Shown: in pieces, positions 8,530-14,224 of the stretch
How positions within the stretch are numbered: the stretch's first letter is position 1
Layout: every line of letters starts with the position of its first letter
Assembly (NCBI RefSeq): GCF_032191835.1
Contig: NC_083236.1
Span: forward strand, 44,764,001 to 44,828,000
Direction of reading: 5' to 3'
Length of the DNA stretch: 64,000 nucleotides
Source: Heteronotia binoei
Lineage: Eukaryota
Made by a program: the position numbers and the translations under genes
Notes under the pieces: model-generated
Seen by the model: only the letters and a program-made list of their open reading frames with translations
What the model was told of the DNA's origin: nothing
Databases searched by the model: none

Positions 8530-9260
8530 AAAATCTCCAGACGTCGCCTGGAGGTTGGCACCCGCATCCCACCGCCCGCTTTCCCTTTCGTTCTAACGCA
8601 CCCATCTCCCACTTCCTGGATTGAAAGAGGAACCGAGCCCTTTCCAAACTTGGAGCTTTGAGCGACGACCACGATGGCCATTGCCAACGCAGGCCGGGCC
8701 ACGAGCTGGCCAATGAGAGCCTCGGATGGAAGGGAGGGCGGGTTGAGTCAACCAAGAGGCCACGCCCGACCGACGGCGACTTCCTAGCTCAGATGAGTCT
8801 ATATTAGTGCAGGGTGAATTTCCCCCCCTAAAGGAAAGAGACCTGCCTATAAGTGGGGGGTGCAAAATGAGGAGACCCCCCCGGGCTGCTCTGCGGGTGG
8901 TCTTCCTGGACTACCTGGCCTTTTACCGCACCAACTGGTCGGAAGGGAAACTTTCCATCTGCAACGAGGCGGCCGTCAAGGCTCCCGCTCGGCGCTTCCT
9001 GGATGCCGAGCCGTGCCCTTCGGAGGGCTTCTGCCAGTTTGACGTGTACGGCGTCGCGGCCAGGTGTTTGCAGGTGAAGCGCCAGCCGGGGGGGTTCGTC
9101 TTCCGACAGCTCATCCGCGCTTTCGAGTTCCTGGAGCTGCTTTGCGTGAACCTCTTCCTCTCGCCTTGGAGGAAAGAAATCCGGTCCTTGAAGGTAAGGC
9201 AGCCGGATGAGAGGGGCAGGCGCAGGATCTTCGCTTGAGCCTTACTTAGGTGTTGGCTTA
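8530..9260. promoter_or_regulatory. CpG-island promoter/exon 1 of the SPATA2-family gene
   Basis: Locally GC- and CpG-rich against an AT-rich, CpG-poor background; CCAAT near 8710, GGGCGG near 8737, TATAAG near 8848. Confidence 0.7.
8867..9193 (+). CDS. SPATA2-family gene coding exon 1 (109 codons)
   Basis: ATG at 8867 (the track's 8807 start is GTG); donor gtaagg at 9194. Confidence 0.85.
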
Positions 9261-12200
9261 GAGATCTGTGACCCGCTTTCCTCTTCCCACCCACACCATG
9301 GGACCAGAAGAAATTTGCAGCGGGGTTCTCCTCTCCTCCTCCAGTCCCAACAACAACCCTGTGAAGCCAGCCAGATTGAGGCAAGAGCAAGTGGCCCAAG
9401 GGCGTGCAGCGAGCTACTGTGACAGAGTGAGGAGTCAACGCCAGCACACCAGACTTTCTCTCTTCTTAGGGCCGACCCTAGACTGTCTGGCAAGGCTAAC
9501 TTCTGCCCCTTGCACTGATAATGTCACCAAGTCACATGGGGGCACCCGATTTGGTGCCCCCAGAAGGCCGGCACCCTAGGCAATCGTCTAGTTTGGCAAG
9601 TGGCAAGGCCAGCCCTGTCTCTCCCCTGCCCCCCATTTCAAACTTTGTACCTACTGAAAGGTAAATAACAGCTTGCAGGCTGGTTAGATGCAGTGCAGTA
9701 AAATGTGTTTTAAGTATTTAAACCAAAGGATGCTGTGTGAATATTGAAGTGTGGAAGTGGCTTTACATGAAAGTGAAGCCAAAACATGTTTACTTGGAAG
9801 TAAGTTCCAATGGGACTTAGCCTGCAGTCGGTCACGTATATGTTTATCTTGCCAATCCTTCAAGGAGCTCAGAACGGTGTGCCTGCTCCCCTTCTTCATC
9901 CCAGTAACCCTGAAAGGTAGGCTAGGCAAGTGAAATGGGGATTTGAAGGCAGGCCTCTCAGTCCAACATTCTCAGCACACTGCCACACTTGCACTGAACC
10001 CATTCAGAATTCCAGTGTGTATTTTCCTCCAAGGAGAACTTAAAGCTTTCTGGACTTTCTGGAAACCTGTGTGGTCTCCTGCCTAGGAAGGTAGGCCTTC
10101 CACATTGATCCACTGTGGTTGTTGGAGGTCTCTGTCAGCTCTGAGAGCTGATAAATGGGACTGAAATGTGGGGTTTTCTGCAGGGTTTTTTTTTTCTGGA
10201 AAAAGAGGTGCTGGAACTCTCAAAAGGGAAATGAAGCAAAACCACACAAATACCCCCATGAACTTTCAAACATTTTTTTGAGAATTTTGTTTCTACAAGG
10301 AGGTTCTGGAACTCCACTCCACCACATTCCCTCAGGGAAAAAGCCCTGGTTCAAAACATTGAACACTCCTTCCCTGTGCTTGCCACTTTGTGTTTGTAAG
10401 GAATGGGTGCAAAAGAGAGCAATGTACAGGAAGGATTCTCAGCTTGCTTGTATGGCCTTGGTCCTGGGCTGTCTAAACAGCTTGCCAAATTAAAATTTAG
10501 AAGGCAACGCTTTTCCTAAGCCTCCCTGAAGAATCTAGGGCATGGCCAGTTTCAGTCTTGTTATCCATTTCTTAAAACTAGAATCCCTGTGATCTTCCCA
10601 TGTGTGGGTTACATTTATAAAGCCAAGGTCCTTTTAACAAGTTCAGTGGGTGGATGGAACAAAGTAGAGTCCCATGGCACCTTTAGGACCAACAGAGTTT
10701 AATTTGGTGTGCATGCACACTTCATCAGATTAATCAGTGTGCATGCACATGAAAACTTTTATCTAGAATTAAACTTGGCTGGACCTTAAAGGTGCCACTG
10801 GACTCACACTTTGCTGTGTTTCTTCAGACCAGCACAGCTACCCACCTGAATCTTTTCTTCATGGAAAGCAGGTGGATGGGTGTGACTTGAGACATATTGA
10901 GAAGCACTGCCTAAAGGCTAAGTTAATTACTAGACCATGCTGGCATATGGTTTCTCTCTGGAGGCTGGTTACACTCTCTCATTTATTTAGCTATATTTAA
11001 ATCCTGCAGTTCTTGCACTAGTAAAACTTGAGGCAGCATATCTGGGGGTCCCAGGACGATTTCCAGCCAGGCACTGATCAGACCCGCATCTGCTTCAGAG
11101 ATGTGTCTGCATCACATATTCTACTAAGATGAGCAGCGGACTCTAATATGGAGAACCGGGTTCGATTTCCCACTACATGAAGCCAGCTGGATGACCTTGG
11201 GCAAGTCACAGGTCTTTCGAATCTCTCTCAGCCTCTAAAAACAAGTTTGCCTTGCCACTAGTATAACATCAAAAGAGAGCCAGTTTGGTGTAGTAGTTAA
11301 GTGCATGGACTCTTATCTGGGAGAACCGGATTTGATTCCCCACTCCTCCACTTGCAGCTGCTGGAATGGCCTTGGGTTAGCCATAGTTCTCACAGAGGTT
11401 GTCCTTGAAAGGGCAACTGCTGTGAAAGCTCTCTCAGCCCCACCCACCTCACAGGGTGTCTATTATGGGGGGAGAAGATATAGGAGATTGTAAGCCGCTC
11501 TGAGACTCTGATTCAGAGAGAAGGGTGGGGTATAAATCTGCAGTCTTCTTCTTCAAAAGCTAGAACTTGCAGCTACCAGATAATCTTAGGATCTCCTGAC
11601 TGTTCCACATACAATGCCATACAATGCTTGTAGAGTATTCTTTTGGTTCATGTGGCTTCTCACAATGTTGCAAAGAATCCTCTGTGCCACATATTTGTGC
11701 TACTGTCTTTGAAAAAAAGATCCCATCAACTACAAAAGAGGTGAATTTAGCAACTAAACTACAGACAAAAAGAGGAACAATTGTAGTCTGTGATTGTCCT
11801 TGATTGTCCTCTCAGTAAGTCAGATTTATTTCTTGCTTACAAAAAGGTTACCTTCCAAGCAGTGTTCCCTCTAAGCTAGTGTGTTAGTGTGAGCTAGCTC
11901 AGTGTTTTAGCCTCTGGCTCACACATTTTTGTCATAGCTCAGGAAAAATGACCCCAGAGCAAACTGATTTATGCAGCAGCTCACAACTTTAAGGCCAGTA
12001 GCTCTCAAAGTAGAATTTTTGCTCACAAGCTTAGAGGAAGTATGGCTTCCAAGTATTTTAAAACTGGCACGCTCACAACAGTTTAAGATCGCAGTTTCCC
12101 TCTCTGAGGTTGAGAAAAGGTGTTCTGGGCTTTTCCCATCCATTTCCTGATGATACTTCCCTCCCCTTCTCCCAGACTTTTACAGGAAACTTTGTCTACT

Positions 12201-13657
12201 GCATGCAGTCAATTCTACCAGAATGCATCGTGGAAGAACTGCTAGCGAAAATAGGCTACGTTGCAACAACAGCAACGGAATTTTCCCTCATCAGGAAGCT
12301 GAAAGAGGAAGAAGCTGAACAGGCTGCCTTTGAAATATTTCTTGCAAGAATCGAATGCGAAGACCTCTTGGAAATCACAAAAGAAGTACGGGACAGTGAC
12401 TTGGAGGATGTCTTGCAGAAAAGAGCCCAAAAGCACTGGCGCCCAGAAGGAGAGGTAGACAGAACGTATCAACCCTCCCATGGAAATGGGTACATGTTGA
12501 ACAAAGGAAGAAATAAGAGACCAAGATACTTTGGTACTCCACAGATATGCTTGACAAATGACCAGCTGCCTTTTGAGAAAGCTGAAAATACTGGGCTTGG
12601 AGGGGACCTTAGTCTCACAATGACCACAGTCAATCCTCAACAGGTTCTTTCCGAATTCAGCAATGAGCAAAACTCAAACCAAAGCCAAGGAGATGGCACG
12701 ACACCATCTTGTGTCAAAAGCTCAGACAGTGAGGACTTCCTAATCAAATATAGTGACATTGTGATTGGGCAGAAGCCTCTCCACCTGACCAATCTCCCCC
12801 TGAAAGCATCAGAGGATAAGAGCTGGGCTACCAAATGCAGGAGGACCATGCTGGGACCACCACCCAACACATCACGCTCGCAAACGGCTCTGTCACCCAA
12901 TGCCAGTGGCCCACAGGCCTTAGCCATTCTGAATGACCCTGCTTTAGAAGGCAGGGAAGTCTCTTGTGACTACGGGACCCAAGAATCCTCCCAAGAGGCA
13001 ATTGAAGCGAATATCAGAGATGCCATGAATTGCCTGTCCATCTGCGGATCGTGTCCGGTGGACCAGCCCAAAGAACTGAAAGGAGAGAATGTTGTACCGC
13101 GCAGCAACAAATTACACATTGTGATGAGTTTATCTCGAGGAGAGGATCCTTATGCCTCTAATCAACGAAAAGTCAAGGAAGACAGTGAAGGTGAACTCAT
13201 TTATCCGATAGAAGAAACCACACAAGCAGAATCCATGAGATATGACACACCTCAGGAATTCAGTCCCTCTAGGGTGAAACATACAGCTGTACCTAGAGGA
13301 GATAAAGAGGATGTCAGCATCGATCTCTATTCATCAGATCAGTTTCCTAGCACCACCCAGAATGTTTATCCCACCACTCATTCGAAGTTTGATGGACATT
13401 TAGTGGGCACTTCAAGTCCACATCAAGCCCTTGAGTGCTACAGATATACAAGAGAGCCGCCTGGTTCAACCTGTGCCATCCTTCCAAGTAGTAATGAGTT
13501 TCAGTTTCCTAGAAGCATTCCAGATCTGCAGGGCAGGGGTGACCTTGAAGGACATTCTCTGCAGTCTTCTTTCACAGACGAGGTCAGCCTCCCGACCTGC
13601 ATTGTAAAAATGAATGAAACCACCCCAGAAGGCTATGTGGTCATAAGCAAAGAGTAA
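8867..13657 (+). CDS. SPATA2-family PUB-domain protein (probable third paralog), join(8867..9193,12176..13657), 602 aa
   Basis: Exon 1 ...LIRAFEFLELLCVNLFLSPWRKEIRSLK joins in phase 0 to TFTGNFVYCMQSILPECIVEELLAKIGY. This matches the SPATA2/SPATA2L PUB signature (SPATA2 recalled as [34 protein letters not shown]). Canonical AAG|gtaagg donor and pyrimidine-rich cccag|ACT acceptor; 1.48-kb stop-free exon 2; CpG island over exon 1. Confidence 0.88.
9468..9617. mobile_element. Short hAT-type MITE (CAGGGCCGGCCCT TIR); sister copy inverted at 29836-30006
   Basis: The two copies align in opposite orientation and have palindromic ends. Confidence 0.7.
10652..10852. mobile_element. Penelope-like element remnant, inverted pseudo-LTR pair
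   Basis: gagtcc..gcaccttta.gaccaac and its reverse complement face each other around gtgtgcatgcacac palindromes. Related pieces at ~3966-4101, 7565-7651, 27895-28000 and 45964-46047. Confidence 0.65.
11275..11554 (+). mobile_element. Squam3-like SINE in intron 1 of the SPATA2-family gene
   Basis: Same consensus. Confidence 0.75.
12176..13657 (+). CDS. SPATA2-family gene coding exon 2 (493 aa + TAA)
   Basis: Acceptor ctccccttctcccag ends at 12175; open to TAA 13655-13657. Confidence 0.9.
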   Translation, partial: TFTGNFVYCMQSILPECIVEELLAKIGYVATTATEFSLIRKLKEEEAEQAAFEIFLARIECEDLLEITKEVRDSDLEDVLQKRAQKHWRPEGEVDRTYQPSHGNGYMLNKGRNKRPRYFGTPQICLTNDQLPFEKAENTGLGGDLSLTMTTVNPQQVLSEFSNEQNSNQSQGDGTTPSCVKSSDSEDFLIKYSDIVIGQKPLHLTNLPLKASEDKSWATKCRRTMLGPPPNTSRSQTALSPNASGPQALAILNDPALEGREVSCDYGTQESSQEAIEANIRDAMNCLSICGSCPVDQPKELKGENVVPRSNKLHIVMSLSRGEDPYASNQRKVKEDSEGELIYPIEETTQAESMRYDTPQEFSPSRVKHTAVPRGDKEDVSIDLYSSDQFPSTTQNVYPTTHSKFDGHLVGTSSPHQALECYRYTREPPGSTCAILPSSNEFQFPRSIPDLQGRGDLEGHSLQSSFTDEVSLPTCIVKMNETTPEGYVVISKE

Positions 13658-14224
13658 TAACAAACAGGAGGAGGTTACACAGATATGAAAAAAAAAAAAT
13701 ACTATGCAAGTATCATAACCCAAAATAACTACATCAATAGGATGTTTTCAAAAGTTTCACAGAATTCATACAAAATCATACAAAACATGAATCATAAAGT
13801 CCCAAAATATTGAGAAAATTGAGAAGTCATTGCTCCTTATAATAACTTGTGGGAACTTTATCAGCTGGAAATCCTACATGGAGATTTTCGATTTGGAAAT
13901 TCTAATATTTGGACACTTCTGTAATTAGTGTTTGTCTTCCTTCTTGATGTTCTAAAAGACTTGTGGATATTTTGGGACTCCACATTGTAGTATCTGTGAC
14001 TCATGTTTTGTGTGGTTTTTTTTTGCTGAAACTTTCAAAATCATTCTAATGACATAGCTATTTGGGGTTACGATATTTGCATAGTATTTTTTCATCGTAA
14101 TAAGCAAAAGGCAAGCAGTAGATTGAATACGTCTCTTGATTTAAGTCCTTCGGAACCTCCCATAGCCAAACACCAGGCAGGCTTTCTAGAAGTGAGTATG
14201 ATGGAGATGTGCCAAACTTGCACC

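Follow-up and report, generated by a model that had tools for sequence, protein, structure and literature searches.

The Locus and Its Gene

The window analyzed here, meaning the whole stretch of 64,000 nucleotides from the gecko Heteronotia binoei, holds zero N stretches. A 515-codon open reading frame (ORF) listed at 12110-13657 is the last exon of the H. binoei gene LOC132582798, and over the matched part its product is 100% identical to the corresponding NCBI protein (P0001, 602 aa). Placed on the window with tblastn, residues 1-110 of that protein align to 8867-9196 and residues 109-602 to 12173-13654. The GT..AG junction between the two blocks (9191|12174) is spanned by RNA contigs from two runs, with both exons covered, and the resulting two-exon model amounts to 1809 nt, or 602 codons and a stop (Table 1). 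LOC132582798 is a spliced, expressed gene. ARAGORN, run on the intronic repeat, gave no match.

Table 1. Coding exons of LOC132582798 and features of its encoded tail, in coordinates of the window.
Feature	Position	Strand	Residues	Content	Basis
Coding exon 1	8867..9191	+	1-108 and first base of codon 109	N-terminal half of PUB-like domain	tblastn, spliced RNA contigs
Coding exon 2	12174..13657	+	109-602 and stop	Remainder of PUB-like domain to ~12448, then predicted disordered tail of ~400 residues	Exon: ORF list, tblastn, RNA contigs; content: PF21388, AlphaFold2, 5LJM fold match
Site 1	12725..12763	+	293-305	D-S-E-D-F-L-I-K-Y-S-D-I-V	Translation, family alignment, BLASTP
Interval of the original prediction	13307..13336	+	487-496	E-D-V-S-I-D-L-Y-S-S	Hand reading, translation
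Squamate conservation island	13319..13345	+	491-499	I-D-L-Y-S-S-D-Q-F	Column conservation in 32 squamates, outgroup comparison
PIM-like core	13322..13336	+		D-L-Y-S-S, inside the squamate island	

A Third SPATA2 Paralog

The sole Pfam match of the protein is PF21388 (SPATA2 PUB-like), which scores 56.1 bits against a cutoff of 27 with the exon 2 part alone, and its closest solved relative by sequence is the PUB domain of human SPATA2 (5LJM; E = 1.2e-10). Modeled by AlphaFold2 with 67 orthologs, residues 1-200 fold with confidence (pLDDT of ~85-95 over most of 10-190) and the rest is left unstructured; when Foldseek was run with this model, the top match was again 5LJM (E = 4.6e-8, TM 0.68), followed by the PUB domain of HOIP. 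For paralog assignment, we combined a profile search of 1.8 billion representatives with source names and a tree, in which LOC132582798 groups with orthologs of si:ch211-189a15.5, outside both SPATA2 and SPATA2L. By this phylogenetic placement, LOC132582798 is the third SPATA2 paralog, which goes by the name si:ch211-189a15.5 in zebrafish. SPATA2 proper is ruled out by the tree; the C terminus of the gecko protein reads GYVVISKE and is without the Cys-rich end of SPATA2. The third paralog is present in sharks, coelacanth, ray-finned fishes, amphibians, sauropsids, platypus, marsupials, armadillo and tenrec, and our literature search found si:ch211-189a15.5 mentioned in no paper.

The stretch of SPATA2 that contacts CYLD, termed the “lower wall,” includes human Tyr114-Thr115 in K-T-Y-T-G (PMC5031558). 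The gecko third paralog reads K-T-F-T-G in this stretch, identical to fish SPATA2, and CYLD binding by the third paralog is therefore plausible. The N-terminal SPATA2-type PUB domain, which would probably bind the USP domain of CYLD, is followed by a tail of ~400 residues, predicted to be disordered and dotted with short conserved motifs.

A DLY Motif in the Disordered Tail

The original prediction placed a motif resembling the PUB-interacting motif (PIM) in this tail, reading E-D-V-S-I-D-L-Y-S-S with DLY at 13322-13330. Counting codons from 12176 (residue 110) in the frame of the ORF assigns these nucleotides to D492-L493-Y494, and both coordinates and residues proved exact by hand reading and translation. 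The translation of 13307-13345 is EDVSIDLYSSDQF. RNA carries a synonymous C>T change at 13321 (Ile491); other animals thus have the motif unaltered. The predicted location in a disordered region was likewise borne out by the AlphaFold2 model, in which residues 396-514 have pLDDT <50 and no secondary structure. A single occurrence of DLY nonetheless counts for little by itself, since D[LM]Y is expected in 5.8% of shuffles of the 387-residue tail (0.23% for the longer pattern [VILM]D[LM]Y[ST]); the weight of the case rests on conservation.

We took the definition of a HOIP-type internal PIM, with its core Asp-[Leu/Met]-Tyr, from published work on OTULIN and SPATA2 (PMC4017264; PMC5031558). In the HOIP-OTULIN structure, only OTULIN residues 54-58 (D-M-Y-R-A) touch HOIP, mostly by backbone contacts, with Tyr and Met filling the HOIP pocket and Asp holding a kink (PMC4017264). 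The M55L variant of OTULIN binds HOIP equally well, Y56A abolishes binding, and Y56F and D54A weaken it by >400-fold and 60-fold, respectively (PMC4017264). SPATA2 D-L-Y-T(-D) binds HOIP identically to the OTULIN motif, at ~300 nM, and HOIP is lost upon Y338A/F substitution (PMC5031558). The gecko D492-L493-Y494 has the Asp-[Leu/Met]-Tyr core. Its position is internal, with 108 residues to the C terminus: the Tyr is followed by S495 and S496, at the positions of the backbone-contacting OTULIN residues 57-58 and SPATA2 residues 339-340, and then by D497. It also lies in an accessible, unstructured segment, given the low pLDDT at 396-514. As an internal D-L-Y-S-S-D in disorder, the segment thus agrees, at the level of sequence, with the published five-residue definition of such a PIM. 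Positional descent from the SPATA2 PIM is what it does not have, as judged from gaps in the alignment and chance-level flanks (see below).

Conservation Within Squamata

The original prediction suggested asking whether DLY forms a conservation island among orthologs, and the answer differs by clade: it does so within Squamata, and DLY is absent from every non-squamate ortholog aligned. Exact DLY is found in 28 of 32 squamate orthologs, representing Gekkota, Scincoidea, Lacertoidea, Anguimorpha, Iguania and Serpentes, in spite of diverged flanks. The four exceptions are two Anolis species (N-S-Y), Hemicordylus (H-P, a gap and then C-S) and one other sequence (D-I-Y); in Anolis and Hemicordylus, the motif was lost and the gene kept. 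Column conservation across the 32 sequences is 0.91 for D, 0.88 for L, 0.97 for Y and 0.94 for each of the two S residues, compared with a mean of 0.40 for the nine residues upstream and of 0.57 for the whole tail. Among non-overlapping five-residue windows of the squamate tail, DLYSS ranks seventh by conservation, and the island as a whole has the consensus [VIM]-D-L-Y-S-S-D-x-F. Stray matches to [DE][LM]Y elsewhere in non-squamate orthologs each belong to a single species, and being unconserved they serve as an internal control for chance motifs in the third paralog; E-L-Y of snakes is a further stray match limited to a small group. Judged by these alignments, DLY at 492-494 is a real, lineage-specific short linear motif.

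Origin of the Motif

At the aligned site, DLY is absent from 71 birds, 6 turtles, alligator, tuatara, 4 marsupials and 3 frogs. The motif is therefore not general to the third paralog, given that bird, turtle, crocodilian, tuatara, mammalian and amphibian orthologs are all without it. Squamates read F-S/N-V-D-L-Y-S-S-D-x-F-C at this site, turtles F-S-V-G/D-Q-S-S-S-N-L-L-G, the alligator V-D-P-S-S-S-R-Q-L-C, birds I/T-E-P-S-S-D-L-C-C, and tuatara A-N-P. Turtles, alligator and birds thus share a conserved sauropsid island, V-[DE]-[PQ]-S-S-[SD]..[LF]-C, without Leu-Tyr, which indicates that the Ser-rich island predates DLY. DLY is common to Gekkota and every other squamate group sampled, which places it in their common ancestor. 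Its gain dates to ~200 million years ago or earlier. From this distribution, we conclude that stem squamates made DLY by two substitutions, P/Q to L and S to Y, in the older Ser-rich island; one nucleotide change suffices for each. Ancestral presence of DLY at residue 492 is ruled out by the outgroups without it. Compared across the family, the residue-492 DLY was gained independently in one lineage and not inherited as a SPATA2-like PIM.

Other DLY Sites in the SPATA2 Family

SPATA2 itself carries its PIM near residue 335 from sharks to mammals, with the pattern [DE]-[VL]-D-L-Y-T-[DEA], and in squamate SPATA2 the sequence is an invariant D-L-D-L-Y-T-D, which implies, indirectly, that the HOIP pocket is still used in squamates. 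When 59 family members were aligned with E-INS-i, this PIM fell within an insertion found in SPATA2 alone, opposite gaps in the other paralogs. With the SPATA2 PIM segment unaligned in the other paralogs, the residue-492 DLY is not its counterpart. We also compared flanks, scoring them alone against a position matrix derived from 52 different 13-mers of the SPATA2 PIM. Similarity to these 52 PIMs was at chance level (P = 0.95 for the gecko; P = 0.14-0.88 for other squamates), and the residue-492 motif is without the acidic run that precedes known PIMs. The flank result weighs little against reading the motif as a PIM, because residues before the Asp make no HOIP contact in the crystal structure.

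A further site, which we call site 1, is the most conserved element of the third-paralog tail, located ~90 residues past the PUB domain and ~195 residues upstream of the residue-492 motif. In the gecko, D296-F297-L298 (12734-12742) is aligned to the D-L-Y of sharks and coelacanth, and the Tyr is gone. Third paralogs of sharks and chimaera read D-S-I/L-D-L-Y-x-E-Y-x-D-I here and that of coelacanth V-D-L-Y-S-A-Y-P-S-L; every tetrapod third paralog reads D-S-E-[DE]-F-L-x-x-Y-S-D-[IL]. The site extends to the other paralogs, with S-V-D-L-Y in coelacanth SPATA2 and [VIL]-D-L-Y in SPATA2L of bichir, catfish, turtle, crocodile, birds, opossum and a gecko. The gecko tail matches that of shark only weakly in pairwise BLASTP (E = 0.66), and homology of site 1 consequently rests on three other observations: an ungapped register, D-S-x-D-x-x-x-x-Y-x-D-[IL]; islands after site 1 that recur in the same order and at equal spacing in coelacanth (BLASTP E = 1e-5); and a sturgeon intermediate, S-I-T-D-I-Y-A-A-Y-P-D-L-A-I-G-Q-K-P-I-F, that bridges the fish and tetrapod forms (E = 0.004). 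On the strength of this alignment, [VIL]-D-L-Y just past the PUB domain is ancestral to all three paralogs. The site 1 DLY is likely to have been the original LUBAC-docking site of the third paralog, and because its Tyr became Leu, canonical HOIP docking of this paralog was probably lost in early tetrapods. The family-wide layout, comprising an ancestral DLY in all paralogs, a second, separate site in SPATA2 and D-F-L in the tetrapod third paralog, is new relative to the literature searched.

Comparison With Known PIMs

The SPATA2 PIM (human Asp336-Leu337-Tyr338-Thr339; PDB 5LJN) resembles the gecko motif in setting: in both, an internal DLY is preceded by V, I or L and followed by a small hydroxyl residue, and the host proteins, of one family, each have a SPATA2-type PUB domain upstream of the disordered region that carries the motif. 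The two differ in that their positions are not homologous (a SPATA2-specific insertion vs. residue 492), in that the gecko motif has no acidic pair before it, and in their reach, the gecko motif being restricted to Squamata and only a putative HOIP binder while SPATA2 retains its PIM all the way from sharks to mammals. The original prediction held that a PUB domain with a downstream PIM reproduces the design of SPATA2. Its architectural part stands, as a SPATA2-type PUB domain (PF21388, 5LJM) is followed by a DLY core in disorder; correspondence with the SPATA2 PIM itself fails, the motif being Squamata-only and the SPATA2 PIM a SPATA2-specific insertion.

The OTULIN PIM (Asp54-Met55-Tyr56-Arg57-Ala58; PDB 4OYK) has the same five-residue internal core, D-[LM]-Y-x-x, but it belongs to an unrelated host protein, and the Arg that follows its Tyr, stacked on HOIP Tyr94, is Ser in the gecko. 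The ancestral site 1 DLY, as retained in shark and coelacanth third paralogs and in SPATA2L from fishes to marsupials and geckos, shares the family and a [VIL]-D-L-Y-[STR] core with the residue-492 motif; it differs in lying ~195 residues upstream, and in the gecko, as in other tetrapods, the third paralog's site 1 is without the Tyr. The p97/VCP PIM (Asp-Leu-Tyr-Gly-COOH) has an identical Asp-Leu-Tyr core, but it is C-terminal and binds PNGase and UBXN6 via its free carboxylate, and HOIP weakly, whereas the gecko motif is internal.

A Putative HOIP-Docking Motif and Its Alternatives

The reading that we favor is that the residue-492 DLY is a functional, re-acquired HOIP-docking PIM, to which we assign a probability of roughly 40%. 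As an internal PIM, it would be expected to act as SPATA2 D-L-Y-T and OTULIN D-M-Y-R do, with Asp492 kinking the peptide and Leu493 and Tyr494 entering the PIM pocket of the HOIP (RNF31) PUB domain. The new DLY would then restore the LUBAC docking that was probably lost when the ancestral DLY became D-F-L in tetrapods, and the third paralog of squamates would become a second or third CYLD-to-LUBAC adaptor and a rival of SPATA2 and OTULIN for the pocket. The fuller scenario of PIM turnover, in which an ancestral docking motif was lost at the base of tetrapods and a working PIM was re-invented ~195 residues downstream in squamates, is more demanding, and from the family comparison we consider it tentative and rather unlikely. 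If it is true, lizards and snakes alone have an extra CYLD-LUBAC bridge that competes with SPATA2 and OTULIN. This would matter in that the HOIP PUB pocket is the single docking point for the control of linear-ubiquitin signaling by OTULIN and by SPATA2-CYLD. [quoted passage not shown] A fourth that arose independently would be a clean natural case of the loss and rebirth of a short motif in an immune-signaling adaptor, and would offer a natural minimal sequence, I/V-D-L-Y-S-S, with which to ask what suffices for HOIP binding. If HOIP is not bound, the finding becomes that of an ordinary lineage-specific motif in an uncharacterized protein.

The most serious alternative is that an older Ser-rich motif was remodeled, with a partner different from HOIP, and resembles a PIM only by coincidence. 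On this account, a docking site, phospho-regulated or otherwise, would be found in the sauropsid island V-[DE]-x-S-S-[SD]..[LF]-C, of which squamates would have fixed a variant with L-Y. We regard it as quite possible, though short of even odds. Turtles, alligator and birds conserve the island well with no Leu-Tyr in it, and because it is older than DLY, constraint at this site does not require HOIP. Moreover, conservation of S495 is at least 90% over 67 orthologs from vertebrates, and among the 32 squamates conservation runs past the PIM core to D497 (0.78) and F499 (0.97), which hints at a different or additional partner. Flanks unlike those of the SPATA2 PIM and the chance occurrence of a bare D[LM]Y in ~6% of such tails fit a coincidental likeness as well. 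Coincidence accounts less readily, however, for Leu (0.88) and Tyr (0.97) having been held for ~200 million years as neighboring residues drifted, or for the presence of exactly the three side chains needed for HOIP binding. It must also contend with the host family, which is the one known to dock HOIP by DLY and in which DLY is ancestral to all three paralogs.

That the motif arose by chance and has no function of its own, with drift and squamate kinship mimicking conservation, is in our judgment improbable. The shuffle expectation of 5.8% and the two lineages that dropped the motif and kept the gene are what such an account would lead one to expect, but in the same 32 sequences the upstream flanks are conserved at 0.28-0.56 and D-L-Y-S-S at 0.88-0.97, and the stray [DE][LM]Y matches of other orthologs are limited to one species or a small group. 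It is less probable still, indeed very much so, that the motif binds another PUB domain, such as that of PNGase or UBXN6, or the PUB domain of its own protein. D-L-Y is also the p97 motif recognized by PNGase and UBXN6, but the internal PIMs of OTULIN and SPATA2 did not bind the PUB domains of those two proteins, nor did any PIM peptide bind to the PUB domain of SPATA2 (PMC5031558). In the AlphaFold2 model, residues 490-500 are likewise not docked onto the protein's own PUB domain, at a pLDDT of ~40. Finally, the notion that the motif descends from a site shared with the SPATA2 PIM (human 336-339), which squamates retained and every other lineage lost, draws on the hydrophobic residue and D-L-Y-[ST] common to both ([VL]-D-L-Y-T in SPATA2) and is contradicted to the point of being barely tenable, as the SPATA2 PIM stretch has no aligned counterpart in the other two paralogs, the ancestral DLY of the third paralog is at 296-298 and not at 492, and separate losses would be needed in tuatara, turtles, crocodilians, birds, mammals, amphibians and fishes.

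The ancestral DLY bears on the remaining member of the family in addition to the third paralog. A PIM in SPATA2L was not mentioned in the literature on SPATA2L and HOIP. The presence of the ancestral DLY across the family suggests that SPATA2L, too, may dock to HOIP, and gecko SPATA2L keeps its own DLY.

SPATA2L and the tetrapod third paralog at site 1

In SPATA2L, the family position downstream of the PUB domain that we call site 1 keeps the motif [VIL]-D-L-Y-[RTSQ], approximately 220-235 residues into the protein, in orthologs from a gecko (Euleptes, P0245), a turtle (P0226), a crocodile (P0252), the opossum (P0223) and fishes (P0217 and P0232). No report of a PUB-interacting motif (PIM) in SPATA2L was found in the literature examined on SPATA2L and HOIP. 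Given this retention of a motif that has gone unreported there, SPATA2L may also, judging from its sequence, dock to HOIP.

In the third SPATA2-family paralog (LOC132582798), site 1 is the most conserved element of the tail across all tetrapods, where it is without the Tyr of the ancestral DLY that sharks and the coelacanth have. Residues 293-300 form a short helix in the AlphaFold2 model (pLDDT ~66). The tetrapod site presumably serves a new partner.

Features of the third-paralog locus, by window position
Feature	Window	Residues	Location
Site 1, D-S-E-D-F-L-I-K-Y-S-D-I-V	12725-12763	293-305	third paralog tail
Repeat copies	11136-12179		intron
Clustered A>G differences	13709-13750		3'UTR

Distribution of the third paralog in mammals

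The third paralog is present in monotremes (platypus, P0124), marsupials (P0113-P0116), Xenarthra (armadillo, P0147) and Afrotheria (tenrec, P0156). Because no boreoeutherian sequence stands among the 150 best profile matches, loss of the gene in that clade is suggested.

Additional observations

A second motif, E-E-L-Y-H-P, is specific to snakes and lies about 20 residues upstream of the squamate DLY (D492-L493-Y494) of the third paralog. It occurs in pythons, boas, vipers and part of the elapids and colubrids (P0020, P0021, P0025, P0032, P0058, P0079 and P0105), and the remaining snakes have E-R/H-Y-H-P in its place.

The intron repeat copies reach very high depth in RNA runs, and many chimeric, backward-running and opposite-strand RNA joints occur there; ARAGORN found no tRNA-like gene in this stretch, and the copies are probably abundant interspersed repeats. 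In the 3'UTR, RNA contigs from two runs carry approximately 12 A>G differences clustered within 45 nt, the subset differing between the runs, and these could reflect either ADAR-type hyper-editing or allelic variation.
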